A DNA stretch of 64,000 bases, taken from positions 11,904,001 through 11,968,000 of the forward strand of contig NW_027361716.1 of NCBI RefSeq assembly GCF_039654945.1, in the 5' to 3' direction. Positions 19,602 through 64,000 of this stretch are shown one piece after another. Position 1 is the stretch's first letter. Each line of letters opens with the position of its first letter. The position numbers were made by a program, and so were the translations under genes. This stretch comes from Dendrobates tinctorius (lineage: Eukaryota). The notes under the pieces are model-generated. The model was given only the letters and a program-made list of their open reading frames with translations. It was not told where the DNA came from and searched no databases.

Positions 19602-19651
<50 letters not shown>

Positions 19652-30966: not shown

Positions 30967-30999
30967 GTGTGTTGGGGTTCGGGTTGGAGTTAGAATTGG

Positions 31000-36618: not shown

Positions 36619-39015
36619 ATGTCTCGGAAAAGTACATCCTCACTCAAAGCAAGGTCATGGGAAAGCTCCAGCAGGTCGTCCTTAGCAGAGCTAGCTGCTG
36701 TCGCTCGTGCCGAGGCCGAAGCAGCCAAAGCGAGATCCTCCTTCGCCGAAAGAGAGATGCATCTAAAGCTGAGACAAGCAGATCAAGATACAGAAACCGC
36801 ACGCCTGCAAATCAAAACCGCACGTCTGCAGGCAGAGAGATTGGTGGAAGCTGCACGCCTGCAAGCCGAAACCGTACGTTTGCAGGCATACAGAGAAACG
36901 GAAACTGCACGTTTGCAAGCAGAGCTAAAAAGACTTGCGGCAGACAAATAGACAGCAGCTGCAATAGCTAAAGCAGAGTGCTTGGAAGCTATGAAGAATC
37001 CTGATTCTGAGAGACACAGCAGCATTCTCGGACCAGATCTAGAGCAGCAAGATCCAGCGCAATGCGTCGCAGAGTACGTCTGTCAACATTCCGGTGTAGA
37101 TGACAGCCCTGGCGCATCATATCGATCAGCCCATGCCGATTACCAGTGGTCCAACCCCGAGCTTCACTACCATAGGCGAGGAGACGCCCAGTACAGAGAT
37201 GTCGACCACAGCTACCGTTCCACTGACAAGAAGGTACAGCTCCCATCATGCCTTAAAGAGACATCTTCTTCACCAACAAGGTACCGCACAGATTATCAGA
37301 TTATCCGGAGTCACAAGCGTCTTACAGGTATGGTGATGCACCAGACACTAGACATGACTATCACACACCAGCTCGTGCCAGCACTGACGGAGCCATCAAG
37401 GACCTTGCAAAGTTCCTTGCCGCCAAGATCTGGTTACAAAGGGATTTGTAAAGTTCACTGACAAACCCGAGAACTATCGGTCATGGCAAGCCTTGTTCCG
37501 GAGCGCCATTTGTGGTCTGGACCTTTCTTGTGGTGAGGAGTTAGATCTCCTGGTGAAGTGGCTCGGAAGTGAGTCAGTCGAGCATGCCAAAAGACTGAGA
37601 GACATTAATGTAAAGCATCCTCGCACAGCCCTGCATAAGGTGTGGGAAAGACTCGATGAATGCTATGGGGCAGTAGCAGTCATAGAGAATGCTTTATATA
37701 AAAGAATTGAGGATTTTCCTAAGATAGGACCTAAAGGTTATTTAAAGATTAGAGAACAGAGAGATTTGTTGAATGAGTTGCAGGTTGCTCAGCAGGAAGG
37801 AGACTTGCCCGGATTGGCATTCTTGGATACAGCTAGGGGTGTCAATCTGATAGTACAGAAACTTCCTTACAACCTACAAGAAAAGTGGATTGCATGTGGT
37901 TCAGAGTACAAACACAATCATAACGTATAATTTCCTTATTTCACTGTATTTGTTGATTTTGTCACCAAACAATCTAGGATTAGAAATGACCCTAGTTTTG
38001 ATTTTACTCTGTCGTGTTCCACTGCCACTGGTGTCAAACCCGGTAAGACACCCGTGACAGTCCACAAAACTAACATTGATTCCACAGGCCCTCCTTACAA
38101 GGTGAATAAACCCCCTCCAGATGAGAGCAAACCTCAGGATGTCAGTAAATATTGTTCTCTACACAAGAAACCACATCCTCTACTAAAATGCAGAGCCTTC
38201 AGGGAGAAGTCTTTAGAGGATCACAAAGGTTTCCTCAAGGAGAGCAACATCTGCTTCAACTGTTGTGCCGCAACCTCTCACTTCATCAGGAACTGTGAAG
38301 CTAGCGTGAAATGTGCAGAATGCAGCAGCAAGGATCACAATACAGCCTTGCACCCTGGATCACCTCCACGAGTGTTGTCGCAAGCAGAGGAGCACGATGG
38401 AAAGCAGAAGGGCACTGACGAAGACACACCGGATGTCAGCTCTAAATGTATTGAGATCTGTAGAGGACTCACCGGAGGAAGGTCCTGTTCAAAAATCAGC
38501 CTTGTCCGAGTCTATCCTGCAGGCCGCAAGGACAAAGCCGTCAAGATTTAGCAATCCTGGATGACCAAAGTAACAGGTCTCTAGCCTGGTCCATCTTCTT
38601 TGACAACTTCAGCATCGTAGGCCCTGGTTCTCCCTACACCCTGAGGATGTGTTCAGGTAAAGTTGAGACGGCAGGGAAAAAAGCAACCGGATACAAAGTG
38701 GAGTCCATAGATGGCCAGACCTGCCTATCATTATCGACCATCCTGGAGTGCCACTAGATTCCTGACAACAGGTCAGAAATACCTTCACGGGAGGTGGCGA
38801 CATATCACCCCCATCTAAAGCGTATAGCCCACCTGATACCTGGACTAGATCCAGGAACCCCAATAGCTCTACTTCTGGGGAGAGATATTCTACAAGTCCA
38901 CAAGGCTAGAGTATGTAAAAACGGCTCCAGGAACACTCCGTACGCACAGAGGCTCGATCTTGGATGGGTCATCATAGGAGACGTCTGCCTAGGAGGAACA
39001 CACAAGCCTGCCTAA
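36619..39015 (+). pseudogene. BEL/Pao gag and protease, disrupted
   Basis: Coiled-coil ARLQAE repeats; triple knuckle CSLH..H..C, CFNC..H..C, CAEC..H..H; protease LDDQS and LLLGRD. Confidence 0.85.
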
Positions 39016-39099
39016 GTCGACAGCATGCTTACCAATACTCTTGAAAATGGATGTCCATCTCTCTTCTAGCCATGTAAGAGTAGCTTCCTGGTAAAAGAG

Positions 39100-40797
39100 T
39101 TGCCACATTATGCTCCTCTACCTTGTCCATTAGCTGATTCTTCCTGTGAAGACCACTCATGTGACGGCCACCAAGATCACATAGGGTGCACAGTTTTCCA
39201 CAGAACAAGAGAGGACAACAAGGTAGCAATGTCCATAGAAGACAGACTGTTTTTGGACATCATGGATCGAGAGATGGTAAGAGATGAGTCAAAGAGTTGG
39301 ATGGCCCCTCTACCATTTAAACCCCAGAGGCAACGCTTACCCACCAGTCAGAAGTCTTGTAAGGGTTGGCACCATTGCAAACACGCATTTACCACTCCTA
39401 ACCTGGAAAACGCCAAAAACACGATAATTCGTACCATACAACGCGAGTGTTACGCTAAAGAAATAGACAACCTCAACAAAGGTCAACCCATTTCTATAGA
39501 CTGCGTCTTGAAAAAGCTTGATCCAATAATTGACCAAAACGAGCTGATACGAATTGGAAGTCGTCTTCAGGAAGCCAAGGTGGAATTCGTGGAAAAACAC
39601 CCTGTAATAATTCCTGGCCATCATCATGTGACTATTCTGCTCGTACAGCACCATCATGTTTTGGTGAAACATCAGGGTCGATCGTTTACCGAAGAGAATC
39701 TACTAACTGCTGGACTATGGATAGTCGGAGCAAAGAGATGTGTGAGTAAACTCATCTTCAACTGTGTGACTTGTCGCAAACTCCGCGGTATGACTCAAAG
39801 CCCAAAGATGGCCAATCTCCCATCAGACAGACTTAGTATGGATCCTCCCTTTACCAACGTTGGACCGGATGTATTCGGGCCGTGGTCTGTGGTTGCATGG
39901 CACACTAGAAGAGTCCAAGCCAATGCAAAACGCTGGGCAGTTATGTTTACCTGCATGTCCATCAGAGCAGTTCACATCGAAGAGATTGAATCCATGGACA
40001 CATCAAGTTTCATAAATGCACTCCGACGCTTCATTGCAATCAGAGGCACCGTGAAACACATTCGCTCTGACAGAGGCACAAATTTCATAGGAGCAGTGAA
40101 AGAACTCCAAATTCCTTCCAACCTAGACATTACGAGTGTGGAAAGATACCTGAATGAACAGGGATGTACCTTGACCTTCAATTTACCACACTCTTCTCAC
40201 ATGGGAGGTGCTTGGGAGAGGATGATAGGAATAGCATGCAGAATCTTAGACTCTATCTTCTTGCAAGAAAGTAGCACAAGACTCACACACGAAGGTTTGA
40301 CTACATTCTTGGCAGAAGTTTCGGCCATCATAAATGCCAGACCATTGACTGCACTCTCCAGTGATGCTGAAGATCCAACCATTCTCACTCCTGCCATGTT
40401 ACTCACTCAGAAAACCAACACTCCTAGCGCTCCACTGGGAGAATTCAGCAGCAAGGACCTCTACAGACATCAATGGAGACAAGTTCAAAGTCTCTGCAAT
40501 ACTTTCTGGGCCAGATGGAGAAAGCAATACCTCTCCACCTTACCGCCTAGGAAGAAGTGGCAGATCGACAAGCCGAACATCAAACCCGGTGATATTGTGC
40601 TCATGAAGGACAGTCAGTCACATCGAAATGAGTGGCCTCTGGGCCTTATCACCAAGGTGTTCCCAAGCAAAGATGAGAAGGTGCGCAGGGTCGAGGTCAA
40701 AGTGTGGAGGGCTGGGGAGAGTAAACTATTCCTCAGACCAGTTGCGGAGCTAATTCTATTGCTTTCGCCTAAAGAGCCTGTAAGTGGCATTAGTTAA
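39100..40797 (+). CDS. BEL/Pao integrase-containing ORF with RT and RNase H deleted
   Basis: HHCC (H..HQG..CVTC), DVFGP, SDRGTNF, GGAWER, WPLG; APLPFK is joined directly to post-RNase H sequence. Confidence 0.85.
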   Translation: MPHYAPLPCPLADSSCEDHSCDGHQDHIGCTVFHRTREDNKVAMSIEDRLFLDIMDREMVRDESKSWMAPLPFKPQRQRLPTSQKSCKGWHHCKHAFTTPNLENAKNTIIRTIQRECYAKEIDNLNKGQPISIDCVLKKLDPIIDQNELIRIGSRLQEAKVEFVEKHPVIIPGHHHVTILLVQHHHVLVKHQGRSFTEENLLTAGLWIVGAKRCVSKLIFNCVTCRKLRGMTQSPKMANLPSDRLSMDPPFTNVGPDVFGPWSVVAWHTRRVQANAKRWAVMFTCMSIRAVHIEEIESMDTSSFINALRRFIAIRGTVKHIRSDRGTNFIGAVKELQIPSNLDITSVERYLNEQGCTLTFNLPHSSHMGGAWERMIGIACRILDSIFLQESSTRLTHEGLTTFLAEVSAIINARPLTALSSDAEDPTILTPAMLLTQKTNTPSAPLGEFSSKDLYRHQWRQVQSLCNTFWARWRKQYLSTLPPRKKWQIDKPNIKPGDIVLMKDSQSHRNEWPLGLITKVFPSKDEKVRRVEVKVWRAGESKLFLRPVAELILLLSPKEPVSGIS

Positions 40798-42429
40798 TGC
40801 CAAGCGGGGAGTATTCTGCCCTCTTAATAGAGAAAAGAATGTTTTATTATGTGCTGGGTTAATTATAACACCATCTATTTGTGGCTTAATTTATAGCAGT
40901 GTCTTCAATAGCATTATAAAGCCTGTGACTTTAACAGAAGCAATGCACATGGGATTAAAGCAGTGCTTTGTGGGAAGGAAGCAATGTATTCTGGGGTGAA
41001 GAAGGGTCATTTTGCTTCAGTGGGTCTCATAGGATGCACATGTTATTTTGTCCTATGTAAGCTTTGTTTTTCCTGCAACTTCTCTACTTGAGTCACTACC
41101 CGGCTAAAGCATATCTTTTTTACTGCGCATGTTCTATACTCTTCACAAATAAACAAGTTAGACTACAGAGAACAGTCTGCTTATTTTGGAAGACAGAGCT
41201 GTGGTTTATACTGTTTGCTGGATTGCACATCGTGTCAGCGTGCCTGAAGGCAGAATATGTACCATGCTGCAATGATGATGTCCCATCAGGTCAGCTAAAA
41301 AGGAATCTGGGATACTGTCAAGAAAAAAGGCAATATTCAGTGCTGCCATCCAGCGGCCACAGATTACTGACATCGCCGATCAGCCAGGTCCTGACAATCA
41401 ATTCATTCCAACTCTATCCACCATGTAAAATAACTTCAGCTGTTATGGGTTGCACTGGTTCAACATTGTTAATGATAGAAGAGCAGTTTACAGAGGATTT
41501 AGACTATTTTTGCCTGATATGAACATGGGTGCCATGCAACCTTCATGTCAGGGCATAGACCTACTTGCAGCCAGTGGAATGTAGTGTGAATACAGTTCCC
41601 TGGTATCTTCTACCTGTGCTGTTTTACACTTTATCATTCACGTTTATTATTTTTATGTAGAAAAGCTGTAGCCTACTTGTAAAATTCAAAATTGAGTCTT
41701 ATATTGCCAGTAAAGGTTTTAAAGTATTTTCAGGCCAAATGTTTCTGTTGTGGACTTTACAGTAAAACACATCCCTTCCAAGAGAATCATTTGATGTTCT
41801 TAGGCAGAACTTTCCCATTTATGATGAAGGTCTACCGGAAGTTCCTCAGGCAGCCCTATAAGCCATAAAAAGCCTTCTCATTTTCCTACCATGCTGGGAG
41901 AGGAACCATTGAAGCTTGTCAATGGCCAGTGCCAAGACCAATAAAGCAATTATAAACCTGAAATTCATGGTGAGCAAAGCCCTAAAACACGGTGGTGAGA
42001 AGTGTAGAATTAGTCCAGTTCATTAAAATCATTAATAGTCATGAAATGAAAAAACCACTAGAGTCCAAAAGGCTTAATGCCCTATCCATATTAATTAGAT
42101 GGAAGCAAATGTGAAGTGAAAAGCAACACATGGTCTGCAGAATTAGCAACTGCTCTCTGCAGACTACACAGATCTCTATTAAAATTCAGTTTAATTAAAA
42201 TTGATCACATTAAGAAACTGATGTGCTTAATTAACTGAATTCCTGGACCTCTTTTCATATATTTCACAGGTGCCTTGTACGCCGATGTCCTTTGTGACAG
42301 TTAATACCGCACCACTCAAAACAAATTTCACAGCTTTAACACCTTCACGTTCAGACTTAGCATGGAAATAACAACTAGATGGAATAATGGGACAGATTTA
42401 CTTAACCTGGCTAAATTTTAGGCAGCATA

Positions 42430-43888: not shown

Positions 43889-44576
43889 CAGGGTGGGCCA
43901 TTTATATGGATACACCTAAATAAAATGGGAATGGCTATAAAAATATGTTGAAAAACTACAGGATGGGCCATTTATAATAATAATAATAATACATTTTATT
44001 TCTATAGCGCCGACATATTCAACAGCACTTTACATTTCTATGGCTACACCTAAATAAAATGGGAATGGTTGGTGATATCAACTTCCTGTTTGTGGCACAT
44101 TAGTATATGGGAGGGCGGAACTTTTCAAGATGGGTGGTGACCATGGTGGCCATTTTGAAGTCACCCATTTTGGATCCAACTTTATTTTTTTCAATGGGAA
44201 TTTCATAAGAAAAACAATGGTGTGCTTGGTTTTAGCATAACTTTATTCTTTCATGAGTTATTTACAAGTTTATGACCACTTATAAAATGTGTTCAAAGTG
44301 CTGCCCATTGTGTTGGATTGTCAATGCAACCCTCTTCTCCCACTCTTGGCACACTGATAGCAACGCCAAAATGGCTGACTTCAAAATGGCCACCATGGTC
44401 ACCACCCATCTTGAAAAATTTCCCCCCTCCCATATACTAATGTGCCACAAACTGTAAGTTGATATCACCAACCATTCCCCATTTTATTTAGGTGTAGCCA
44501 TAGAAATGTAAAGTGCTGTGGAATATGTCGGCGCTATAGAAATGAAATTTATTATTATTATAAATGGCCCATCCTG
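43889..44576. mobile_element. Tc1/mariner-type MITE, rearranged
   Basis: TA|cagggtgggccattta ... taaatggcccatcctg|TA; long inverted arms. Confidence 0.85.
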
Positions 44577-44662
44577 TAGTTTTTCAACATATTTTTATAG
44601 TAGCTGGATCTCTATATTATACACACAGAAAACCATATCCATTGATACAAACATATAATTAA

Positions 44663-49425: not shown

Positions 49426-50252
49426 AGCATGTACTGTGACTATAGAGTATACTGGCGGGAGATACAAAATCTGTAAGGTAACCAAAGGTTGGGAGACAGT
49501 GAGTATTGCCTGGCATGGGAGCAGTGGAAGTACCTGCCTCAGGTTGGAATCTTGTGGACAGGGGGCAATGTATTTTGACCATCTACCTCGAGTTGTTGTA
49601 AGACCATGGACATAAGGAATAAAAAATAGTTGCATTGTGTCATGATCCATGCTGGATCAGGACTGATAAAAAGCACAGGTAACCTTTTTTTTTCTAAGCT
49701 ATGCTTAAGTTTGGTTTTTGCCCCCAGTGGCCATTAGGATTATTGCACTGTGGTGCCGTTTGTTCAAGTTTGCCCCCGGTGGTGGTGAGCATCATTGCAC
49801 TCAAGTTTCTTTAGTTAAGTGCACATGATTATAATGCAGGTGTGATTGCTGGCTCTGCTATAAAAGAGTCACAGGTGTTGCAATCAGTGTTGGTGATAGT
49901 GTTCATTTCAACCATCCTTGGTGGAGGAAGGAGCTGGAGAGCGTTCCTTGCAGCACTGTCTTAGCCCTGGTGTGGAAGGAGTCATAGGGGATTTCATTGT
50001 AGCTCTGACAGAGCTTGGTGGCAGCGATTCAGGAGGAGAGCTGCATTCTGGTGGTGGACTCTGTTGCCAGGAGCAAGTGCAACAGAGTAAAGCTAAGTGG
50101 TGTTTCCCCGTTTGTGTTTTTCCTTAGTGTGTATTAGTACAGCGGTGGGGCCAGTGCCTGCGCCACCCAGCTCCCTAGCAAGGAATAGGTGTAGGGTGTG
50201 CTAGGGCGACAGGTTCCTGATTGGCGCCCAGTGCGGAACAGACATAGGGAAC

Positions 50253-51050
50253 TGTTGTGAGTTCATTTTTCCCTTCACCATTGAGGTCTGATGAACTCCC
50301 TCTTCTGGTGAAGGAAGGTAGTGAGGCTGATTACAAAGCACCTGAGCAGAATGATGACGACTGGGTGACTGGAATTTCTGACTGGATATAAAGCAGCCGA
50401 CGCCCTTCTGCCTTGCGAGTGATTTCTCTGAGGGATTCTTGGAGACCAGTCTGATTCCTGCTCCTCAAAAGCTAAATTTTCTGCTCTGCTTTTTGCATTT
50501 GTGTTTTGGTTTTGTTTTGCCTTGTTTTTCTGGATTTCTGCCTTTCCCTGCTGGGTGAGCTGAATTCCTTTTTGCTCTGTCTTCAGAAAATACCTGAGTA
50601 CTGATATAGTCTTTTTGAAGCCTAGCGTCTTCAGGGCTTTTTTCCCTATCAGTCTGTTGGCTCTTGTTTTGAGATGGTTTTGGCGGATTGCAGACAGCAG
50701 CTTTTCTATCCTGTCCTATTTAGTTAGCTTGGGCCCCATCATTTGCTCAGCCTATCTTTCTATCTGTGTGAGTGTTTTTTCATCTTGCTTCACCGTCATT
50801 ATATGTTGGGGGCTGCCTATTGCTTTGCGGTCTGCTCTGGGGCAGTTTAGATTTCCCTTTCTGTCTTTAGGCTATGTAGTTCTCCGGCTGTGATCGAGGG
50901 GTCTAGGGCACCGTAGGAACCCCCCACGGCTACTGCTAGTTGTTGTTGTTAGGTTCAGGGGTCTGCAATCCGATAGCTGCCAACTTCTCTGGTTTTCTGG
51001 ACTTAGCTAGTATTTCTGTTTTTGCCTCCTACGGTGACTCATTCATAACA
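50253..51050 (+). mobile_element. Solo LTR related to the LTRs of 51164-55793
   Basis: tgttgtgag...ttcataaca; TSD gggaac; empty site in the 3' LTR at ~58573. Confidence 0.92.
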
Positions 51051-52036
51051 GGGAACGTTAGGAGCGTTAGGGACACTGACTCAGGGGAGTGCAGGAGGTC
51101 TCCATGTCCCCTTTCCCTATCGCAGGGCCCACCGTCATAACTGTTTTCCCTTCCCCTTGTCTTTGTTATGAATGAGTCACCGAGGAGGAAAAAACAAAAA
51201 GCAAGCTAAGCCCAGAAAACCAGAGAGGTTGGTAACTAGCGGATTGCAGACCCCTGATCCTATCCACACAACTAGCAGTAGCCGTGGAGCGTGCCTACGG
51301 TGGTCCTAGACGCCTCATCACGGCCGGAGAACTAAATAAGCCTAAAGAAAGAAAGGGTAAATCTAAACTGCCCCAGAGCAGACCCCAAAGCAATAGACAG
51401 CCCCCAACATGTATTGTCGGTGAAACAAGATAAAAACACAAACAGAGATAGAAAGATAGGCTGAGCAAACGATGGGGCCCTCACTAACTAGAAAGGACAG
51501 GAAAGAAAAGCTGCTGTCTGCAATCACGCAAAAAACCCTGTCCAAAAATGTCCAACACGTCTGATAGAAAAAGGCCCTGAAGTCGCTAGACTTCAATTCC
51601 CTATATCAGCACTCAGGTATATTCTGAAGACAGAGCAAAAGAGATCAACTGATCAGAGACAAAATGGGGATTCAGCCCAGTCCCAGCCAGGGCTGGCTGA
51701 ACACAAAAACTAAGTAAACCAGACGGAAGCTCATATGAACAATAGCAGAGAAAACTTAGCTTTAAGAAGGCAGGAACCAAACTGGAAACCAGAAGCCACA
51801 GTCAGGAGAAATCACCAGCAAGAAACTAAGGAGTCGGCTGCCTTAAATCCAATCAGAAATTCCTGATGTCCAATCACAGTCCTCTTCCTCAGGTGGCCGG
51901 TTTCTGCCATTTAGATCAGCTTCATTACCTCCCTTCACCAACAGAGGGAGTCCAGATAGAGAACTCACTACTCCTCTGTCAGCACAGCCAGCTCCATAAC
52001 CCTCACCAGAAGCCAGAGGTAAACCCTAAATTGAGC

Positions 52037-52651
52037 TCACAACAGTACCCCCCCTTGAGGAGGGGTCACCGAACCCTCATCCACACCACCGGGCCGATCA
52101 GGATGGGCCCGATGAAAAGCACGAACCAATCTATCGGCATGAATATCAGAGGCAGAGACCCAAGAATTGTCCTCCTGGCCATAACCCTTCCACTTGACCA
52201 AATACTGGAGTCTCCGTCTAGCCAGACGAGAATCCAGTATTTTCTCTACCTCATATTCCACATTAACTTTAACCAATACAGGGTCAGGAGGTGCCGCCAT
52301 AGGAACTACTGGCTCAACATATCTCTTCAACAGCGACTTATGAAACACGTTATGGATCTTAAACGTAACAGGAAGAGCCAATCGAAAAGAAACCGGATTA
52401 AGAATCTCCAAAATCTTGTAAGGTCCAATAAATCTTGGCTTGAAATTTGGAGAAGCCACCCTCATAGAGATATTCTTTGATGACAACCAAACCATATCAC
52501 CCACTTTAAACTGGGGACCAATGGTCCTATGCCGGTTAGAAAACCGCTGGGCCTTTTCCTGGGAGTGAGACAACTTATCCACTACTTGGTCCCAAATCTG
52601 CTGCATTCTCTCTACGACAGTGTCAACACCTGGGCAGGCTGAAGATTCCAC
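52037..52651 (-). pseudogene. Integrase C-terminus with GPY/F and chromodomain
   Basis: RFIGPY; EYEVEKILDSR..QYLVKWKGY..NSWV. Confidence 0.92.
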
Positions 52652-52666
52652 TTGCCCTGAAGAAAA

Positions 52667-53824
52667 TCAAGGATGAAACCCAAAGTTACAGAAAAAGGGG
52701 GACATCAAGGTGGCAGAACTAGCTCTATTATTTAAAGCGAATTCGGCCAAGGGCAAAAATGAAACCCAATCATCCTGATCAGCAGATATAAAACATCTCA
52801 AATAGGACTCCAAAGTCTGGTTTGCTCTCTCCGTCTGCCCATTGGTCTGAGGGTGAAACGCAGAGGAGAAGGACAACTGAATTCCTAGCTTGGAATAAAG
52901 GGCTTTCCAGAATCTGGAAACAAACTGAACTCCTCTGTCCGATACAATGATCTCAGGAATCCCATGCAACCGAACCACCTGTTGTAAAAACAAGGGTACC
53001 AACTCTGAGGAAGATGGCAACTTTGGGAGTGGTACAAGATGGACCATCTTAGAAAATCTATCACAAATCACCCAGATAACAGTCATTCTCTGAGAGACAG
53101 GAAGATCAGAAATAAAATCCATTGAAATATGGGTCCATGGCTTCTTAGGCATCGGCAAGGGCATCAACAACCCACTAGAGCGAGAACAGGGTTTAGACCG
53201 GGAACAAGTCCCACAGGACTGCACAAAATTCCTGACATCACGAGATAAGGCAGGCCACCAAAAAGACCGACTCACCAATTCTCTGGTACCAAAAATACCT
53301 GGATGACCAGCCAATGCGGAGCAATGAACTTCAGACATCACTCTCTTCCTCCACTGGTCAGGAACATACAATTTTCCCATAGGACAACGATCAGGTTTGT
53401 CCTCCTGGAATTCTTCCAGAGCACGTCTCAAATCGGGCGAGATGGCAGAAAGAACTACCCCCTCACCTAGGATGGTAGTAGGCTTGGTCACAATAGGAGA
53501 ATCAGCAAAGAAACTCCTAGAAAGGGCGTCTGCCTTAACATTCTAAGTGCCTGGAAGAAAGGAGACCACAAAATCAAAATGCGTAAAAAGCAAGGCCCAC
53601 CTTGCCTGTCTAGGATTCAAGCATTTGGCCGACTCAAGGTAAATAAAATTCTTGTGGTCAGTGAGGACCACAACTTGATGTCTAGCTCCCTCCAACCAAT
53701 GTCTCCACTCCTCAAATGCCCATTTCATGGCTAACAATTCCCGATTCCCCACATCATAGTTGCGTTCAGATGGGGAGAACTTTCGGGAAAAGAAGGCACA
53801 GGGACAAAACAGCTCCTGCACCAA
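52667..53824 (-). pseudogene. RNase H and integrase core, frameshifted
   Basis: [16 protein letters not shown]; H..GHPG..CGTC; SMDFI, SDRGVQF, GQTER. Confidence 0.92.
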
Positions 53825-55346
53825 TCTCTGAAGCGTCTACCTCCACCTGAACAGGAAGTGAGACATCAGGTTGCCGCAAAACCGGGGCAGAAGTGAACCT
53901 CCGCTTCAGCTCCTGAAAGGACGAAACAGCCTCTGAAGACCAATTCAGCACATCAGCACCCTTCTTAGTTAAATCAGTCAGTGGTTTAGCAATACCAGAA
54001 AAGTTAGCTATAAATTTACGATAAAAATTAGCAAAACCCAAAAACTTCTGGAGAGCCTTCAAAGAAGTGGGTTGAACCCAATCACAAATGGCCTGTACCT
54101 TGGCCGGGTCCATTTCAATAGTTGACGGAAACAAAATAAATCCCAAAAATGAAATCCTCTGCACACCAAAAAGGCACTTCAATCCCTTAACATACAAGGA
54201 ATTCACTCTCAAAATCCGGAACACAGTCCAAACATGTTCCACATGAGAATCCCAATCCTTGGAAAAGATCAAAATATCATCCAGATAGATGATCAAAAAC
54301 TTATCCACAAAGTCCCGGAAAATATCATTCATGAAGGATTGGAAGACAGAAGGGGCATTAGTGAGCCCAAAAGGCATCACCAGGTACTCAAAATGTCCCT
54401 CCGGAGTATTAAACGCCGTCTTCCATTCATCCCCATGCTTGATGCAAATAAGATTATACGCCCCCCTGAGGTCAAGCTTAGTAAGCCAGCAAGCACCTTT
54501 AACTCTGGAGAATAGATCAGAAATCAGGGGTAACGGATACTGATATTTAACCGTAATTTTGTTGAGGGAACGATAATCAATACAAGGCCTTAATGAACCA
54601 TCTTGCTTGGCCACGAAAAAAAAAACAGCACCTAATGGTGAAGAGGATGGTCTAATATGACCCTTCTCCAACGACTCCTTAATATAAGATCGCATAGCCT
54701 CGCGTTTGGGTGCAGATAAATTGAAAAGTCGACCCTTGGGAAATTTACACCCAGGTCTCAACTCAATTGCACAGTCATAACTCCTATGAGGAGGCAAAGA
54801 CGCAGACCTGCTCTCACTAAATACATCATAAAAATCAGCGAAATAGTCAGGAACATCATGCGACTGGGGAGAGGTGGAGAAAACAGGAGTGTCGCCAAGA
54901 GCAAACCGACAACCCCAACTCACCACAGACACAGATTTCCAATCCAAAACCGGACTATGGATTTGCAACCAGGGAAAACCAAGAACAATGGTATCATGTA
55001 AATTATGCAACACCAAAAATCTGCAATTTTCTTGATGGTCTGGGGCGACCCGCATTATCACCTTGGTCCAAAACTGAGGTTTATTCTTCGCCAAAGGAGT
55101 AGCATCAATACCCCTCAAAGGAATAGGCATCCGCAGAGGTGTCATAGGAAAACCACAATGTTTAGCAAAATCCAAGTCCATCAGATTCAAGGCCGCTCCT
55201 GAATCCACAAAAGCCTTCACGGAAAATGTGGATAAGGAGCAGATCAGAGTAATTGCCAAAAGAAACTTAGGTTGTACGCAAAAAACCCTGCCAAAAAATG
55301 TCCAACACGTCTGATAGAAAAAGGCCCTGAAGTCGCTAGACTTCAA
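53766..55346 (-). CDS. Protease plus reverse transcriptase ORF fused to LTR sequence
   Basis: FVDSGA, CIDYR, MPFGL, YLDD, VDAS; first ~24 codons are LTR-derived with a TTG start. Confidence 0.85.
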
Positions 55347-55914
55347 TTCCCTATATCAGCACTCAGATATATTCTGAAGACAGGGCAAAAGAGATCAACT
55401 GATCAGAGACAAAATGGGGATTCAGCCCAGTCCCAGCCAGGGCTGGCTGAACACAAAAACTAAGTAAACCAGACGAAAACTCATATGAACAATAGCAGAG
55501 AAACTTAGCTTTAAGAAGGCAGGAACCAAACTGGAAACCAGAAGCCACAGTCAGGAGAAATCACTAGCAAGAAACTAGGGAGTCGGCTGCCTTAAATCCA
55601 ATCAGAAATTCCTGATGTCCAATCACAGTCCTCTTCCTCAGGTGGCCGGTCTCTGCCATTTAGATCAGCTTCATTACCTCCCTTCACCAACAGAGGGAGT
55701 CCAGATAGAGAACTCACTACTCCTCTGTCAGCACAGCCAGCTCCATAACCCTCACCAGAAGCCAGAGGCAAACCCGAAAATAAGCTCACAACAGTCTTGT
55801 TGTTTTAGTTACCGGCCTGCGAGCCGTGTCACACAGGACAGTATCACGTGCCACGTCTTGTTGTTTTAGTTACCAGCCTGCGGGTCGCATCACACAGGAC
55901 GGGTCCACGTGACA

Positions 55915-55925
55915 TTATCACCAAC
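55915..55925 (+). promoter_or_regulatory. Self-priming type PBS
   Basis: ttatcaccaac is complementary to gttggtgatag (49889-49899), located 30 nt after the LTR TATAAAA (49859). Confidence 0.7.
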
Positions 55926-55949
55926 CGACAACTTTTTTTCTGCTGAGCC

Positions 55950-57932
55950 ATGGACCCAGTTCAGACCTTTGCCCAAATGCAGCAGACCCTTACTAATGAG
56001 ATTAGGGGGCTGCGTGGAGGGTTAGTGCGGCAGCTGCAGCTGTTGGTGGGCTCTGGGGGCTTGGTTCAGGAACAGGCTCAGCCAGAACCCAAGATATCCC
56101 TCCCTGACAGATTTTCTGGAGGGAGAGATCAATTTTTGCTGTTTCAAAAAGCCTGTAAATTGTATTTCAGGCTGCGCCCTCGTTCATCAGGGAGTGAGGA
56201 GCAACAGGTGGGAATCATTATGTCCCTTCTTAAAGGGGATCCCCAATCCTGGGCCTTCTCCCTACCGGACGATTCTCCATCTTTAGAGTCCGTGGACAAG
56301 TTCTTTGCGGCTTTGGCGCTTGTGTATGGGGATCCTGATGGCGTCGCCCTGGTGGAATCCCGAATCCGTAGGTGTAAACAGGGAGCCCGGGTCGCTGAGG
56401 AGTACTTCTCAGAGTATAGGAGATGGGCCACTAATACTCAGTACTCAGTGGAATGACCCTGCACTTAGGAGTCAATTTGTGCAGGGTTTGTCTCCAAAGT
56501 TGCAGGATACTCTGGTGCAGTACGCCGCCCCCAGGTCGCTGGAGGCCGCCATGTCCCTTGCCATCCGGGTGGATAGACGCCTTAGGGAAAGACATATACA
56601 AAAAGTGCCCCCTGATGTCCTCGCTAGGGAGGAGGACCCACCAGTGTGGACGGAGGAACCCAGACAGCCCGGTGTTGTTGATACAAAAAAGGGGGTGTCT
56701 GAGGCTTGTCATGGTGGGGGGTATCCTTTTCCTGTGGGAAGCCTGGCCATTTTATTAGAGCCTGCCCAGTTCATGCTAAGTCTCCTGTCGAACCTATGCA
56801 AGTAGGAGGAGCTAGTTTGTATTCGGACCTGCCTATGGTTCGGGGAGTGGTGTCGGCATGTTTGTACTGTGGGCAGACTGGTCATGTCCTGAAGGCTTTC
56901 CCATTGCGCGCCAAATTATCTGTGCCATCTGAGAAGCCGCATTCCCCTGGTTGCTTGGAGGGAGGCGACCAGGGAGTATACATTTCCTCCATTTTGCCCT
57001 CCCAAGGTACCATGTCAGCAGAGGTCTTGGCTGGCGGGGTACCGGAGGTGATACCGGTATTTGTGGACAGCGGAGCAGGAGTCAGTCTGGTGGATGCTCG
57101 CTTTGTCCAGACTCATGGTCTGAGGTGTAGGACTCTAGCCCAGCCTATAAGCGTCCAGGCCATAAACTCTGTTCCACTGAGCCAGGGGAGCTTGACCAAG
57201 GTCGTAGAAAATATCCATCTGTGTATAGGACATCATGAGGAGTCCTTGTCATGCTACGTCTTAGAGGGAATGCCAGTACCTATTGTTTTAGGCCTCCCTT
57301 GGCTGAAGAGACACAACCCGGTAATAGATTGGCGGGCGAGGGAAGTGGTCAGCTGGGGGCACTCGTGTGAGGGCTGCTGCCTAGGAACTACTGTCTCTGC
57401 CATCTCTCTTCAATGGACCCCTTCCTCTCTGGTGAGGGCAGCGGATGTGCTGCAGGAGAGTAGGGGCAAGTCTCAACCCTCGCCATTGGCCATCCCTGGG
57501 AGGCGCAGACCTCGTGGTGGAAGGGGTTGGAGGGTGGTGTACCCCTTGGTGAGGTGCGGGGGTGTGAGTGTGGTGACACAGGGGGATGCCTCTGTTGTCA
57601 ATCCCAGAAAGAGTTCTCCAAGTGGTGACAAACGAATGAGTGGCAATAAACGTTCAGGTCCGGACCTGTGTGTGAACGAGCGTGTATGGGTGGCCACCAA
57701 AAAACATTTAGTGGAAGTGTGTTGCGGAGTGTTACCAGCTCATACCAAACATACACATACACAACCCGTTCCCCAGGTCAGCGCTTCGGAGATGTGTGTT
57801 GCCTCCAGAACATACGTTGCCAATACCAGCGGGCTCATTTCTCATCAACCTGACATGCAGCTAGTTGCTGGGGTGAACTCTGGGTCTGGGTGTCCCCGCT
57901 GTAGGTGGTTCCCTGCTGGGGAGTGGTCTTGA
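55950..57932 (+). pseudogene. Ty3/PEG10-like gag plus protease with short pol remnants, two frameshifts
   Basis: PEPKISLPDRFSG, WNDPAL..QF, CGKPGHFIRAC, CLYCGQTGH, FVDSGA, VLGLPWL..HNPVIDW; tactcag duplication at ~56435-56448. Confidence 0.88.
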
Positions 57933-59714
57933 GGGTCCAGAGGCCCCTCATTAAGGGGAGGGTACTGTCATGATCCATGCTGGATCAGGACTGATAAAAA
58001 GCACAGGTAACCTTTTTTTTTCTAAGCTGTGCTTAAGTTTGGTTTTTGCCCCCGGTGGCCATTAGGATTATTGCACTGCGGTGCCGTTTGTTCAAGTTTG
58101 CCCCGGTGGTGGTGAGCGTCATTGCACTCAAGTTTCTTTAGTTAAGTGCACATGATTATAATGCAGGTGTGATTGCTGGCTCTGCTATAAAAGAGTCACA
58201 GGTGTTGCAATCAGTGTTGGTGATAGTGTTCATTTCAACCATCCTTGGTGGAGGAAGGAGCTGGAGAGCATTCCTTGCAGCACTGTCTTAGCTCTGGTGT
58301 GGAAGGAGTCATAGGGGATTTCCTTGTAGCTCTGACAGAGCTTGGTGGCAGCGATTCAGGAGGAGAGCTGCATTCTGGTGGTGGACTCTGTTGCCAGGAG
58401 CAAGTGCAACAGAGTAAAGCTAAGTGGTGTTTCCCCGTTTGTGTTTTCCTTAGTGTGTATTAGTACAGCCGTGGGGCTAGTGCCTGCTCCACCCAGCTCC
58501 CTAGCAAGGGATAGGTGTAGGGTGTGCTAGGGCGACAGGTTCCTGATCGGTGCCCGGTGCGGAACCGGCATAGGGAACGTTAGGAGCGTTAGGGACACTG
58601 ACTCAGGGGAGTGCAGGAGGTCTCCACGTCCCCTTTCCCTATCGCAGGGCCCAACGTTGTAACTGTTTTCCCTTCCTCTTGTCTTGTTGTTTTAGCTACC
58701 GGCAGTATCACGTGATGCGTCTTGTTGTTTTAGTTACCAGCCTGAGGGTCGCGTCACACAGGATGGGTCCACGTGACACATTGTTAACCTGCCTAGGTGA
58801 TTATTACTATCCAAAACCTCAGATCTTCACAGTGATAAAGGGTGAAGACTAGGGCAACCCTTGTGATCTGAAAAACGGTGCCAAGTCCTGTTTGTGGTAG
58901 CCCTCTTTAGAGCTGCCAATTGACCATGTACTGTACTCCATTTCCAATTAGCTGTATTGACTAAAAAATCCTAATATGTATGAAGACCTTAACACATCTG
59001 AGGAAAAACAGGGTGTAAGAGGTAGTATCCACACTTATATGAGATGTGATAATACTAGGAACAACTCTGTTTCAATGTCTTGGGATGTGAAAGAATCAGC
59101 TGCAGCTCTTTTTGGATACTCGGTCAGCTGTTGGATGCTGACATTATGTTCAATAATAATTTAAAATAAAAAATATGAATGGGAGTAGCACGGCAGTGCT
59201 GGAGAATTTGAAGTTTCCAATTGAAGCATTTATTTGTACATGGATAGTGCAGGGCTAGGCATTTCAATACTGAATCACTGCCTTCCTTTGGGCCACTTAA
59301 GGCACAGATTAAGTGCAAAACCCATAGCCCTGCTTATTCTATTCCCATTCCTCTTTTTTTATTTTTAAATATTATAGGTGTAATGTATGTTTTAAAAAAT
59401 AAATACCCTATTTAAAAGTGTTATTTAGGCTTACCCATGAAAACTTACAAGGCCATGCTTCAAAATTGTGCCACCAAATAGCACAGATTTTTACATAGTG
59501 ACAAAAGCAGCTACATAACAACCTTTAGTGTTAATTTTGCATGAAAACACCATCTGCTTGACATAACAATCTTAAGCCCAGGATCTCCTATAGTCTGGGT
59601 ATGCTTAATATGATATCTAAAGGTCACACAAAAGGTTTAATTGCTTGCCATACTACTTAAAGGGCTTAGACACTAGTGCAAAAATATTCTCACTTCAGAC
59701 TGTTTGGCTGCCTA

Positions 59715-59853
59715 NNNNNNNNNNNNNNNNNNNNNNNNNNNNNNNNNNNNNNNNNNNNNNNNNNNNNNNNNNNNNNNNNNNNNNNNNNNNNNNNNNNNNN
59801 NNNNNNNNNNNNNNNNNNNNNNNNNNNNNNNNNNNNNNNNNNNNNNNNNNNNN
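59715..59853. other. Assembly gap adjoining a (CTAT)n microsatellite (to ~59904)
   Basis: N run followed by ctat repeats. Confidence 0.99.
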
Positions 59854-60128: not shown

Positions 60129-61343
60129 TGTGGCACCCCTGAGGGTCTGGTCACCACAGAGGTACTGCACCTCATCCAGAGCTGTGGTATCCCACACTCA
60201 GGTAAGGAGGGAACACCACACAGGACTCCTATCACTTGCACCCAATACACACCAGACTGGCCAGGAAAGGGTGTTGGGAGGCAGGTGGGAATGGTAGGTA
60301 GAGTGGGAGGAGCTTAGCAGTGGAGTGATAGCTAGGCATCCAATCAGATTGAGGAAGGTGACAGTTGGTGGGAGGAGTTAGTTCTGAGGTAAATAGATCT
60401 TTCCAGAGGGTAGTCAGTTGGTGACAGGATAGCGGAGGAGCAGGACTGGCGCAATGAGAGTCTCAGTCAGTGAGAGAAACATCCAGAGGGAAGCTCCTGA
60501 GAGAAGAGAAGGGGCCTTTGGGGCACGGATCGTGCGTTAAGCCAACCGTGGGACCCGCATCCTGAAACGAGGACCAGGTCGCAGTGAGGAAGCCGGCCCC
60601 TCAAACTAGTGGAGTACTACAAGGCTCAGCTAGAAAGCCGGAGGCTGAGGTGACTTTAAGTACCTCGGCCACAACCGTACACATTCCTAGCAAAGGTGGC
60701 TGTAGAGGATCCCGGGGCCTGACCCCTGTCGCCTGGTGAGATCTGTGGCTGCCGGCTTGGGGACACTGTGTGCGAAGGCGCAGGGCAGGAGAGAGAGGAG
60801 TGAACAGCGCAGAGAGACAACCTAGAAAGGTTAACACAAGGAGGAGTCCTGAAAAGGTGAACCCAATCTACCTTGGAGTTGGCTGGACCCCTCTCCCAGA
60901 GGACACAGTACCAAGCGGGGATTCAAGTAACAAGAAACTTGTGAGTAAAAATCCAGAAACTGCACCCGACTGTGTCCTTTGTCTTCTTACATCTCTTCTG
61001 CCATACACCGCACTCAATATCACCATCACCGGCTCAACTGCCCTGGGACACCGCTCTACCTGTGGAGAGCTTTACCATCCCCGCTGCCCTAACACCGTCC
61101 CAGAGGATCTGCAGAGCAGCGTCGGCTTAACACCCGCATTGCCGAATACCACAGGTGGCGTCACGAATCCCCTTTTCCTAATTCATTTTCCTACCATCTT
61201 CCCTCAACATCTGAACTTCCATCATTGACATTGGACCCCCAGGGCCACGGACCAGGTCACCATCACCACCGTGACACACTTCCCCTTTGAAAGAGCCTGA
61301 AAGGCCCGGTTCCGAGTAACCCCCGGCCCCGCTGGGCACTCCA
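60129..61343 (+). mobile_element. Solo Gypsy LTR
   Basis: tgtggcaccc...gggcactcca; 4-bp TSD taaa; 3' part shares blocks with the LTRs of 11925-21445. Confidence 0.9.
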
Positions 61344-62921: not shown

Positions 62922-64000
62922 TGTGCTAGTGGGTCGCCCTCCCAGGGCTGTGGGGTACTCGGTACCGGGCCGGTCTCTCAGAGGGGATTGTCACAGCAGT
63001 GGTGACCCGGTCCGTGGCCCTGGGCGCCCATGTAAAAGGGGGGTATTGAATGGTGGAATAAAGTTGAATGATTCGTGACGCCACATGTGGTGTTAGGCAA
63101 GGGGGGTGTTAGGCCGACACTGCATGCATATCCTCTGGGACTGATGGTATGGCGCAGCAAAGATGTTATAGCGCCCCACAGGTGGAGCTATAGTCCCAGG
63201 GCAGTGTAGATAAGCGTTGTAGGACTGGTGCAGTGTAGGCACAGGGATGTAGTGGTGCAAGGTGTGTGGCGCAGGAATGAGTGGAGGACACCAGGGCATG
63301 TAGTTCCAAAGCTTTACTCACAGTCTGTTGTACAAACAGGTGCCTGCTTCCGTGCCGTGTCCTCCGGGCTAAGGACTCAGTCAACCTCCAGGCCAGATGG
63401 AATACTCCTTTCCAACACTCCGCCAACATGTGCCTTTCTGAACGTCTCCTCTTATAGCGCCTTTAAGTGAAGTACTCCTAGTACTGAGTTACACTGGAGT
63501 TCCTCCTGTCCGATGTTCTTATGAACTCTGCTTGTACAGCAGACAGCTGTAGCCTGCTTCGGGGACTCCTTGCTACTAAGTTCCGGCTCACTATCCAGTT
63601 GCTGTTGTGCCCCCACGTCTTGTGTGGTAATAAAGCGGTCACTACTTCTATTCCCCCGGTGTCTGCTGCAGGAGCATTAGTATCCATACAACCTCTGGGA
63701 CCGGGCCCCGGCCTTGCACTTAGAACTTCTAGGAAGGGTTCTCTTCTAACCCACATCCTCTGTTCTCTTTTGCTCCTCACGTTCTGTACTAATCTTTCTT
63801 TCTATGGAAAATCAGGCTTTCAGTCTATGTCGCTCTCTCTCTTCATTTCCTGTGCCAGCAGACCCAGGTCACTGGGATCTGCTGCAGCACTCCCATCCAT
63901 CTATCCCTCTCTCTGGGGATCTTCTTCTCTCTCCAAGTGAACAACAACTCTCCACCTAAACTCTTCCCGCTCTCTTTAATGCCACTAAGCTCCACCCACC
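62922..64000 (-). mobile_element. Gypsy LTR running off the window, same family as 4075-6043
   Basis: 63530-63940 closely matches 5350-5760; shared terminal blocks. Confidence 0.85.

Follow-up and report, generated by a model that had tools for sequence, protein, structure and literature searches.

Within the window, a 64,000-nucleotide stretch of the Dendrobates tinctorius genome (GCF_039654945.1, NW_027361716.1, positions 11,904,001 to 11,968,000), a solo long terminal repeat (LTR) of a Ty3/Gypsy element lies at 60129-61343. It has TG...CA ends and is flanked by a 4-bp target-site duplication, and its last ~300 bases encode a conserved RNA. The first 130 bases of this RNA fold into a covariation-supported double pseudoknot, which ends in a 12-base copy (here, iPBS) of the element's own tRNA-Ser primer-binding site (PBS). 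This suggests a way of handling the reverse-transcription primer that we could not find described.

LTRs and their shared 3' region

The ordered blocks of the solo LTR recur in four further LTRs of the window, all on the minus strand, at 62930-63219, 4088-4381, 11922-12267, and 19003-19354. Between families, only the first ~126 nt and the last ~300 nt of the LTR align. The five LTRs represent three lineages (here, A, B, and C) of one gag clade that share LTR termini and PBS. The LTRs at 11936-13118 and 19016-21445 are the two LTRs of one element (element C; 89 to 94% identical), and those at 4100-5115 and 62941-63952 belong to one family (B2 and B1; 74% identical). The gag is PNMA-like, and reverse transcriptase (RT), RNase H, and integrase domains are present. 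Sequences from outside the window are given L numbers.

TABLE 1. Positions of the LTR features within the window, with lineage variants
Position	Strand	Feature	Observations
60129-61343	+	Solo LTR of lineage A (TG...CA), flanked by the duplication TAAA	Ends align with other LTR copies
60944-60949	+	Invariant AGTAAA, followed by ACTGCA (60959-60964) and TGTGTCCTTTGTC; putative poly(A) signal, cleavage site, and GU-rich element	88-127 nt upstream of the module in every main lineage; would place the R/U5 border near 60964
61039-61167	+	5' domain: five helices, two pseudoknots, and iPBS	122-135 nt in all 18 copies
61043-61049	+	Helix b, 5' strand CUGGGAC; pairs with 61097-61103	CUGAGGC/GCCUCAG (L004), CCGGGGC/GCCCCGG (L002b), CUGGGAG/CUUCCAG (L006)
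61053-61070	+	Hairpin a, GCUCU[ACCUGUGG]AGAGC; stem 61053-57/61066-70, 8-nt loop L 61058-61065	Stems GCUCU/AGAGC, GCUCC/GGAGC, GCCCU/AGGGC, CCCCU/AGGGG, ACUUC/GGAGU
61082-61089	+	Helix c, 5' strand (CGCUGC at 61082-61087); pairs with 61114-61121 and interleaves with helix b (first pseudoknot)	Position 7 is A-U, G-C, U-A, C-G, or G.U in different lineages; core changes from C-G to A-U in L006
61097-61103	+	Helix b, 3' strand GUCCCAG
61114-61121	+	Helix c, 3' strand (GCAGCG at 61116-61121)
61122-61145	+	Hairpin e; follows helix c with no gap	Stem differs in each lineage: UCGGC/GCCGA, CUGGUC/GACCAG, GCGGUC/GACCGC, GCGGCU/AGCCGC, GUGGUG/CACCAC
61149-61156	+	L', CCACAGGU; pairs with loop L (second pseudoknot)	L/L' variants ACCUGUGG/CCACAGGU, ACCCACGG/CCGUGGGU (family D), CCCGUGG/CCACGGG (L004), UCAAG/CUUGA (L006)
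61156-61167	+	iPBS, UGGCGUCACGAA; equals the first 12 nt of the true PBS, complementary to the last 12 nt of tRNA-Ser(CGA)	In L004 both PBS and iPBS read UGGCGUAGUCGG, matching tRNA-Ser(AGA/UGA)
61168-61236	+	Variable A/U/C-rich spacer	About 30-110 nt in other copies
61237-61343	+	3' half: CCCAGGGC 61238-45, ACCAGGUC 61251-58, CGUGAC 61270-75, GGCCCGGU 61303-10, GGCCCCGCUGGG 61325-36, and LTR end	Conserved and self-complementary; ACCAGGUC/GGCCCGGU (helix d) has one mismatch in this copy
63072-63203	-	5' domain of copy B1	LTR ends at 62930
4237-4368	-	5' domain of copy B2	CpG decay in the iPBS; LTR ends at 4078
12121-12249	-	5' domain in the 3' LTR of element C	LTR ends at 11925
19210-19338	-	5' domain in the 5' LTR of element C
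18935-18953	-	True PBS of element C, TGGCGTCACGAACAGGATT	gag follows at 18678-18001

A preliminary description of the window had reported these blocks (helices b, c, and d, hairpin a, and its loop partner), together with compensatory changes between copies, and this observation is confirmed: every block lies where it had been placed, and the cited changes (gctct/agagc versus gctcc/ggagc and gctgcg/cgcagc versus gctgca/tgcagc) are real. Its interpretation, a selected multi-pseudoknot RNA in the U5 or leader of five LTRs from divergent families, is only partly supported. A selected, multiply pseudoknotted RNA exists in the 3' part of the LTR, folds on the sense strand, and probably lies in U5, but it is in the LTR and not in the leader. 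Of the functions that had been listed (IRES-like, packaging, dimerisation, priming, or catalytic), priming is the one that the data favor. Hairpin e, the iPBS, and the change of the iPBS together with the PBS had been missed.

Coding potential does not explain the conservation. One block showed a third-position-like substitution pattern in frame with an open reading frame at 60770-61228, but the frame shifts between blocks, stops fall at different places in the copies, and this frame has no Pfam hit. ARAGORN finds no tRNA or tRNA-like gene in the window. No Rfam family matches the window at gathering score, and the only hit at E<=10 is SNORD18 (E=4.7), on the opposite strand.

Covariation in the 5' domain

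On the five window LTRs alone, complementarity is high (90.8% of cells paired, against 34 to 42% for slid controls), but covariation is not above chance: two pairs have two-sided change, and 212 of 500 shuffles reach that value. We added 13 copies from Dendrobates, Phyllobates, and Anomaloglossus assemblies and one Logan contig. On an unfitted MAFFT alignment of 18 copies, 90.1% of cells in the 5' domain are paired, against 36 to 44% for slid partners, 15 pairs have two-sided change, against 3 to 8, and the covariation score is 0.292, against 0.08 to 0.12. None of 500 shuffles reaches the observed value. The shuffle control does not preserve relatedness, whereas the slid-partner controls do. 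In an exact permutation test over eight lineages, with one representative per lineage, only the identity permutation of 40,320 reaches the observed pairing. Single helices give 2 to 240 of 40,320 (2 to 4 for hairpin e), and the result is the same when cognate and noncognate strands are optimised equally. The sequences were, however, chosen by similarity, and the structure was derived from them.

Three wholly different L/L' sequences stay complementary, and junction lengths are nearly constant across lineages. G.U outnumbers A.C 29 to 10, so the sense strand folds. Thermodynamic folding alone is unremarkable (z-scores of -1.2 and -1.6, not significant), although minimum free energy folding cannot represent the pseudoknots.

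The support does not extend to the 3' half. RNAalifold gave a weak consensus there with a covariation penalty, and our helices g, d, and f are 84% paired with no pair showing two-sided change. Likewise, CCCAGGGC near 61238, proposed as an alternative partner of CUGGGAC, lacks covariation and is not kept in L004 or L002, where helix b is kept through compensatory changes.

Covariance models of the module, run over 309 kb and 171 kb, found no copies beyond the 18, plus one truncated copy. Exact-pattern scans for CCACAGGTGGCGTCACRAA gave five hits in metagenome collections and none in viral collections. A search with the module profile (nhmmer) matched three of the five weakly, over about the pattern only, and missed the other two, and we take all five as chance. 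A gag-profile search of 1.84 billion representatives was followed by inspection of the contigs. Relatives in assembly GCA_028390025.1 share the tRNA-Ser PBS but have A/T-rich LTRs without the module, and Logan contigs L012, L020, and L021 break at or near the PBS, giving no LTR and no transcript-end information. A second protein search with the L004 gag found no new proteins.

The internal copy of the primer-binding site

The true PBS lies 3 to 4 nt after the LTR end in L001, L002, and L005 and shortly after it in the interrupted element C. It is complementary to the tRNA-Ser(CGA) 3' fragment tRF-Ser-CGA-013. The iPBS is identical inside the LTR in lineages whose spacers are unalignable, and it lies 150 to 165 nt upstream of the true PBS in the uninterrupted 5' LTRs. 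It repeats the first 12 nt of the true PBS and is therefore complementary to NCCA plus the acceptor 3' strand of the primer tRNA-Ser. In L004, the one lineage whose PBS (TGGCGTAGTCGGCAGGATT) matches the tRNA-Ser-AGA/TGA 3' end, the iPBS is TGGCGTAGTCGG, so six substitutions changed together. This co-switch is a single evolutionary event (two near-identical LTRs).

The match between iPBS and PBS stops at 12 to 13 nt in every lineage, which argues against passive copying of 18 tRNA nucleotides. An unbiased scan for repeated TGG-12-mers found, outside repeat-rich stretches, only the iPBS/PBS pairs and two isolated matches in L005. Cognate iPBS-tRNA duplexes have predicted energies of -20.8 and -22.5 kcal/mol, against -9.4 and -10.2 for the cross pairs. 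Because 3' and solo LTRs carry the whole region up to the LTR end, productive priming occurs at the downstream PBS. The invariant AGTAAA block about 100 nt upstream suggests that the module lies in U5; this is an inference from poly(A) site anatomy, made from sequence alone.

Possible functions and related systems

Our preferred reading, which remains tentative, is that the module is a cis-acting RNA in the long U5 of the genomic RNA of a clade of Ty3/Gypsy elements of dendrobatid frogs, and that it is a scaffold with an auxiliary, nonpriming docking site for the primer tRNA. In the fold, helix b encloses hairpin a and one strand of helix c, helix c closes across helix b, and the iPBS is left as a 12-nt single strand immediately 3' of L'. 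In this view, the tRNA helix would stack on L-L', giving 7-8 + 12 bp, about the length of a PBS duplex, and extension from the iPBS would be disfavored because the template just upstream is occupied by loop L. Docking could open the acceptor stem, raise local primer occupancy, and hand the tRNA to the full 19-nt PBS; alternatively, it could gate access to the PBS. The structure is well supported: our analysis establishes the five helices, their covariation, folding on the sense strand, the identity of iPBS and PBS, and the change of the iPBS together with the primer tRNA. The U5 location (with the transcription start and poly(A) site), actual tRNA binding, and the docking or hand-over role are inferred. 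Several points weigh against this view. Related elements in another frog assembly (L014-L019) use the same PBS without any such module, which is therefore not required for tRNA-Ser priming. Moreover, a second site for the same 12 tRNA nucleotides cannot bridge one tRNA to two places and is a liability for plus-strand transfer.

A more far-reaching version, which we consider doubtful although it is not excluded, is that the domain is a eukaryotic, retroelement-encoded tRNA-end receptor. The scaffold would capture the free 3' NCCA and acceptor strand of one specific tRNA isoacceptor family on a 12-nt platform and stack it on the L-L' helix. It would then either pass the opened tRNA to the PBS by toehold-type displacement or gate the start of reverse transcription according to the supply of uncharged tRNA-Ser, which would be T-box-like logic in a vertebrate mobile element.

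Among the alternatives, the one that survives best, though it is unlikely, is a fossil combined with an internal switch. The 5' domain would be the ancestral U5 end (...CCACA), a 2-nt spacer, and the ancestral PBS, carried into the LTR when priming moved to a downstream PBS copy. The iPBS would no longer bind tRNA but would compete with the true PBS for an internal anti-PBS segment (CGUGAC at 61270-61275), which would set whether the PBS is open or closed. The sequence ...ACCACA|GG|TGGCG... indeed has the anatomy of an LTR end plus PBS. CGUGAC or UGUGAC pairs with GUCACG of the iPBS and PBS, and in L004 the homologous place reads GACUAC, complementary to GUAGUC of its changed PBS and iPBS. Cognate duplexes are -10.2 and -9.0 kcal/mol, against -5.6 and -4.2 for the cross pairs. 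However, the anti-PBS is only 5 to 6 bp and was found post hoc, a search for one conserved anti-PBS by duplex folding showed that the best partner of the iPBS in the 3' half differs between lineages, and the 3' half shows no statistical covariation. A fossil alone explains neither the six coordinated changes in L004 nor the sharp 12-nt limit of the match.

Somewhat less likely is a packaging or dimerisation signal, recognised by Gag or linking two genomic RNAs through L-L' pairing between molecules, with the iPBS incidental or secondary. Covariation cannot distinguish intramolecular from intermolecular L-L' pairing, an 8-nt loop fully complementary to its partner is sterically easier to pair in trans, and structured U5 and leader domains serve packaging in retroviruses and in Ty1/Ty3 (PMC4974528). 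On the other hand, L and L' are not palindromic, the constant junction lengths suggest one compact intramolecular fold, and this reading does not explain why the 12-mer must equal the PBS and change with it.

Another RNA machine (a self-cleaving ribozyme of the HDV-like nested double-pseudoknot type, an exonuclease-resistant RNA, or an IRES) is very unlikely. The nested and interleaved topology and the G-poor junctions are compatible with compact tertiary folds, and a hairpin loop inside a closed helix pairs with downstream sequence, as in xrRNAs. However, nothing points to an IRES or a ribozyme: Rfam families, including HDV-like, hammerhead, twister, and other ribozymes, xrRNAs, and IRESs, gave no relevant match, the helix order differs from the HDV order P1-P2-P3-P1-P4-P2, and the domain lies more than 500 nt upstream of the gag start codon in element C. 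None of these roles explains the link between iPBS and PBS.

A DNA-level element is less likely still. In this case the blocks would be transcription factor sites (E-box-like, RUNX-like, and CRE half-site-like), the A/T-rich spacer would hold a TATA box, and the 5' domain would be in U3. TATAAA occurs in the spacer of lineage C and of B2, CATAAA occurs in L005, and CACCTG, ACCACA, and CGTCA resemble known factor sites. However, two-sided compensatory changes occur in all five helices, the G.U over A.C asymmetry shows one strand folding, TATA-like hexamers are absent from A, L001, L003, and L004, no TATA box was found about 30 nt upstream of the domain, and the AGTAAA block fits a poly(A) site better. 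That the covariation merely reflects shared ancestry and selection by similarity is the least likely, given the lineage-level exact test, the slid-partner controls, and the L/L' variants, although the window alone gives no significant covariation.

Primer selection and placement is a rate-limiting and poorly understood step in the replication of LTR elements, and the known auxiliary contacts (Ty3, Ty1, Drosophila Gypsy, HIV-1, and RSV) all use other parts of the tRNA. A double pseudoknot that presents a second copy of the PBS, and that changes with it when the primer changes, would be a different solution. The covariance model also gives a structural marker for annotating a large Gypsy clade in the giant, repeat-rich genomes of poison frogs, and the domain is one of few examples of a structured noncoding RNA conserved across vertebrate retrotransposon families whose LTRs are otherwise unalignable.

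The bacterial T-box leader presents a short single strand (UGGN) that pairs with the free NCCA end of a specific tRNA, but it is a transcription or translation control element with a separate anticodon-reading stem; the analogy is one of logic only, and no homology is implied. The 5'-terminal long-range pseudoknot of Ty1, a Copia-type yeast element, is needed for reverse transcription; it involves the PBS region and gag coding sequence, has no duplicate PBS, and shows no sequence relation to the frog module. The HIV-1 primer activation signal and the RSV U5-IR/U5-TΨC interaction are U5 motifs upstream of the PBS, embedded in structure, that contact the TΨC arm of the primer tRNA and regulate initiation. 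Here, loop L is ACCUGUGG, ACCCACGG, or UCAAG in lineages with the same PBS, and in L004 it follows L' and not the tRNA-Ser(AGA) T arm, so that L and L' pair with each other, not with the tRNA, and the tRNA-matching part duplicates the PBS. Tf1-type self-priming does not apply, because the PBS matches 17 to 19 nt of the tRNA-Ser 3' end and the only internal complement is a 5- to 6-nt segment. Nor does the LTR resemble those carrying small-RNA genes (Cassandra and Helenus; PMC10886601), since the iPBS is antisense to only 12 nt of a tRNA and the flanks do not continue the tRNA complement.

Drosophila Gypsy has two sites of 11 to 12 nt that bind the primer tRNA-Lys,2, of which only the 5' PBS is needed for cDNA synthesis, so the second is nonpriming; no pseudoknot scaffold is described there (PMC1635307). 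In the bipartite 5'-3' PBS of Ty3 (Gabus et al. 1998, as reviewed in PMC5371799), a second genomic segment complementary to the primer tRNA likewise exists in addition to the PBS next to U5. It lies in U3 at the RNA 3' end and pairs with other parts of the tRNA (the TΨC and D arms), so that one tRNA bridges both ends. In the frog elements, the second site instead repeats the same 12 nt as the PBS, so both sites need the same tRNA nucleotides; it lies about 150 nt upstream of the PBS in the same LTR and sits at the 3' edge of a pseudoknot.

The LTRs and additional copies of the module

The 64-kb window is repeat-dense vertebrate DNA. The gag open reading frame (ORF) next to one of the LTRs has its closest relatives, at 57-69% identity, in proteins annotated from Dendrobates tinctorius, Anomaloglossus baeobatrachus, and Phyllobates terribilis; the source is therefore a poison-frog-like genome, and nothing in it is human. 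The lineage A LTR starts with TG, ends with CA, and is flanked by TAAA on both sides, so it is a solo LTR. Self-comparison shows that the five LTRs, which the preliminary description took as representatives of divergent families, are three lineages (A, B, and C). The two lineage B LTRs are 74-88% identical, and the two lineage C LTRs, which belong to one minus-strand element (element C), are 89-94% identical. Between lineages, only the first ~126 nt and the last ~300 nt of the LTR align.

The observation made in the preliminary description held: the complementary blocks that it named in the LTR at 60129-61343 are all present where it placed them, they recur in the same order in the other four copies, and the two compensatory changes that it cited are real. 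On the five window copies alone, complementarity is high (90.8% of cells are paired, against 34-42% when the partners are slid), but covariation is not above chance, since two pairs have two-sided change and 212 of 500 shuffles reach that value. The region is not coding, because reading frames shift between blocks and stops fall at different places. A search against Rfam returned nothing, and ARAGORN found no tRNA.

To obtain more copies, the gag protein and its relatives were used to fetch the encoding contigs. This gave 13 further copies: three in contig L001, two in L003, and one in L005 (all from Dendrobates), two in L004 (from Phyllobates), two partial copies in L002 (from Anomaloglossus), three copies of a much more divergent family (family D) on the minus strand of L002, and one in a Logan contig, L006. 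Two covariance models, one searched over 309 kb and the other over 171 kb, found no further copies. More-distant gag relatives in another frog assembly (L014-L019) have the same primer-binding site (PBS) but A/T-rich LTRs without the module.

Coordinates of the features (window positions unless a contig is named)
Feature	Location	Strand	Remarks
Lineage A LTR	60129-61343	+	Solo LTR
Lineage B LTRs	4100-6045; 62941-64000
B2 LTR, internal duplication	4690-5349 / 5349-6044		About 660 nt
Lineage C LTRs (element C)	11936-13118; 19016-21445	-	The 5' LTR is interrupted by a 1.2-kb insertion
Insertion and extra stretch in the 5' LTR of element C	19353-20584; 18956-19015		1.2-kb insertion; extra GC-rich stretch of about 50 nt just before the LTR end
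gag ORF	18001-18678	-	Next to one of the LTRs
PBS of element C	18953-18935		TGGCGTCACGAACAGGATT, downstream of the 5' LTR; gag follows
LTR 5' end	60129-60254; 5923-6045 (-); L012 5549-5568		TGTGGCACCCC..., about 126 nt, also conserved between families; its first bases recur after a purine-rich tract in a distant Logan element
Putative poly(A) block	60944-60980		Homologous places in L001-L005; family D and L006 lack a canonical hexamer there
Helix b	61043-49 with 61097-103
Hairpin a	61053-57 with 61066-70
L-L'	61058-65 with 61149-56		Hairpin a loop with its partner
Helix c	61082-89 with 61114-21
Hairpin e	61122-26 with 61141-45		Absent from the preliminary description
Internal PBS copy (iPBS)	61156-61167		UGGCGUCACGAA
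Older copies of the internal 12-mer	4237-4248; 19210-19221; L001 8723-8734; L003 9440-9451		Departures from TGGCGTCACGAA
Possible anti-PBS	61270-61275; L004 about 9445-9452		CGUGAC or UGUGAC; GACUAC in L004
PBS of distant gag-clade members	L014-L019 9946-9965; L020 1-14; L021 13-32; L012 41-60		tRNA-Ser(CGA) PBS; LTRs lack the module; short-read contigs end at or near this PBS
Sequence typical of a tRNA-derived SINE	3560-3690	-	Ends in GGGATTCGAACCC...GCTAACCACTGAGCCACC; beside the B2 LTR
Inverted-repeat pairs	22499-24120; 43935-44600		727 nt at 98.5% identity; 240 nt at 94% identity
Tandem array	30996-33610		Unit of about 390 bp; copies 79-87% identical
BEL/Pao-like LTR element	35838-41249		Direct repeats 35838-36274 / 40814-41249 (93% identical) flank an ORF with an integrase core and DUF5641 (39100-40797)
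Second nested pair of Gypsy elements	49638-58685		LTR pairs 49638-50252 / 57966-58578 and 51526-52046 / 55276-55795, both 97% identical; protease-RT and integrase ORFs on the minus strand (52667-55346), zinc-knuckle/protease ORF on the plus strand (56706-57932)
Run of N	59715-59853

A covarying double pseudoknot in the 5' domain

From the conserved start UGCC to the end of the block UGGCGUCACGAA, the 5' domain of the module is 122-135 nt long in all 18 copies, and it contains five helices. Helices b and c interleave, and loop L lies inside helix b and pairs outside it, which makes two pseudoknots. Junction lengths are nearly constant across lineages. Divergent lineages supply many compensatory changes: CUGGGAC/GUCCCAG, CUGAGGC/GCCUCAG, CCGGGGC/GCCCCGG, and CUGGGAG/CUUCCAG in helix b; GCUCU/AGAGC, GCUCC/GGAGC, GCCCU/AGGGC, CCCCU/AGGGG, and ACUUC/GGAGU in hairpin a; and ACCUGUGG/CCACAGGU, ACCCACGG/CCGUGGGU, CCCGUGG/CCACGGG, and UCAAG/CUUGA in L-L'. 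In helix c, one position is A-U, G-C, U-A, C-G, or G.U, whereas the stem of hairpin e differs in almost every lineage.

On a plain MAFFT alignment that was not fitted to any structure, 90.1% of cells are paired (against 36-44% for slid partners), 15 of 33 pairs have two-sided change (against 3-8), 48 cells have two-sided change (against 5-17), and the covariation score is 0.292 (against 0.08-0.12). No shuffle out of 500 reaches the observed values. The 18 copies, which fall into about eight lineages, were all chosen by similarity. Because relatedness can inflate such numbers, we took one representative from each of eight lineages and enumerated all 40,320 ways of assigning 3' strands to 5' strands. 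Only the true assignment reaches the observed total, while each helix alone is reached by 2-240 permutations. The result holds when the position of the 3' strand is optimised equally for cognate and noncognate combinations. Furthermore, G.U pairs outnumber A.C oppositions 29 to 10; the folding strand is therefore the sense strand, that is, the RNA. Minimum free energy folding alone is unremarkable (z-scores of -1.2 and -1.6). It also cannot represent the pseudoknots.

The 3' half of the module is conserved, but its structure is unproven. Helix (d) of the preliminary description and further complementary blocks that we noted (CCCAGGGC with GCCCUGGG, and GUCAC with GUGAC) are 84% paired in 12 copies, yet they show no pair with two-sided change, which is no better than shuffles. 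RNAalifold gives a weak consensus, and the compensations seen by eye in L004 and L002 require register shifts. The alternative partner that had been proposed for CUGGGAC (CCCAGGGC near 61238) is not maintained in L004 or L002, whereas helix b is. The earlier interpretation of the blocks is supported in part: a selected, multiply pseudoknotted RNA in the 3' part of the LTR is supported, whereas helix (d) and the alternative partner of helix b lack covariation.

An internal copy of the primer-binding site

The sequence that element C carries downstream of its 5' LTR, TGGCGTCACGAACAGGATT, lies 3-4 nt after the LTR end in L001, L002, and L005. It is the exact complement of the human 3' fragment tRF-Ser-CGA-013, TCCTGTTCGTGACGCCA (PMC9659620), and is therefore the PBS for a tRNA-Ser. 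The conserved block that ends the 5' domain, UGGCGUCACGAA, is identical to the first 12 nt of this PBS, and we call it the iPBS. Its first U is also the last base of L', so it starts where L' ends. In the uninterrupted 5' LTRs, it lies 149-165 nt upstream of the PBS. In L004, the PBS is TGGCGTAGTCGGCAGGATT, which is complementary to the 3' end of tRNA-Ser-AGA-1-1 and tRNA-Ser-TGA-2-1 (PMC10359600), and the iPBS of both L004 LTRs reads TGGCGTAGTCGG, so that six positions changed together, although this co-switch is one event.

The match between iPBS and PBS ends after 12-13 nt in every lineage, which argues against passive copying of the 18 tRNA nucleotides during plus-strand synthesis and for selection on exactly this length. 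Departures from the 12-mer in older copies are mostly G-to-A or C-to-T transitions, most of them at its two CpG sites, consistent with methylation decay after insertion. An unbiased scan of all frog loci for TGG-initiated 12-mers repeated within 80-500 nt found, outside repeat-rich stretches, only the iPBS/PBS pairs and two isolated matches in L005. Cognate iPBS:tRNA duplexes are calculated at about -21 to -22 kcal/mol, against about -10 kcal/mol for the cross combinations. Solo and 3' LTRs contain the whole region up to the LTR end; productive priming therefore occurs at the downstream PBS, and the iPBS is a nonpriming site.

The position of the module in the transcript is inferred from sequence alone. 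Logan contigs break at the PBS, and no TATA box was found about 30 nt upstream of the domain. An alignment of the upstream 200 nt shows an invariant AGTAAA 88-127 nt before the domain in all main lineages, followed after 10-14 nt by A(C/U)UGCA and then by a UGUGUC or UUGUCU run. This matches the anatomy of a vertebrate poly(A) site, which comprises a hexamer variant, a CA cleavage site, and a GU-rich downstream element. By this inference, the R/U5 border is placed near 60964 and the whole module in a long U5, and the module would then be present at the 5' end of the genomic RNA, between R and the PBS.

Inferred mechanism and comparison with known systems

Our analysis shows the structure of the 5' domain, the strand that folds, and the identity and covariation of the iPBS with the PBS, whereas the location in U5, tRNA binding, and any role in handling the primer are inferred. 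The most economical reading is that the pseudoknot scaffold presents a single-stranded 12-mer that docks the NCCA end and the acceptor 3' strand of the primer tRNA-Ser. In this view, the docked helix would stack directly on L-L', the two together spanning about 19-20 bp, the size of a PBS duplex, and loop L would occupy the template just upstream, which would disfavour extension from the iPBS. Such a site could capture and unwind the tRNA and pass it to the full 19-nt PBS, or it could regulate PBS use.

A variant of this reading is that the iPBS competes with the PBS for a short internal mimic of the tRNA end. This segment, CGUGAC or UGUGAC, mimics the tRNA acceptor 3' strand, can pair with GUCACG of the iPBS and PBS, and may be an anti-PBS. 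In L004, the homologous position reads GACUAC, which is complementary to its changed PBS; however, this is a 6-nt post hoc observation from one lineage. The sequence ...CCACA|GG|UGGCG... also looks like an old LTR end plus PBS, and the domain may therefore have originated when priming shifted to a downstream PBS copy. That explains its origin but not its maintenance.

A literature search for the PBS string found nothing, and the module is not a tRNA-like LTR of the Helenus/Cassandra kind. Ty3 has a bipartite PBS whose second part lies in U3 and pairs with other arms of the tRNA (PMC5371799). Drosophila Gypsy has a second, 11-nt tRNA-Lys,2 site near the genome 3' end. The HIV-1 PAS and RSV U5 contacts pair with the T-psi-C arm. 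The frog module shares with these the idea of an auxiliary tRNA contact, but it lacks their defining feature, because its second site duplicates the PBS itself. Loop L does not track the tRNA.
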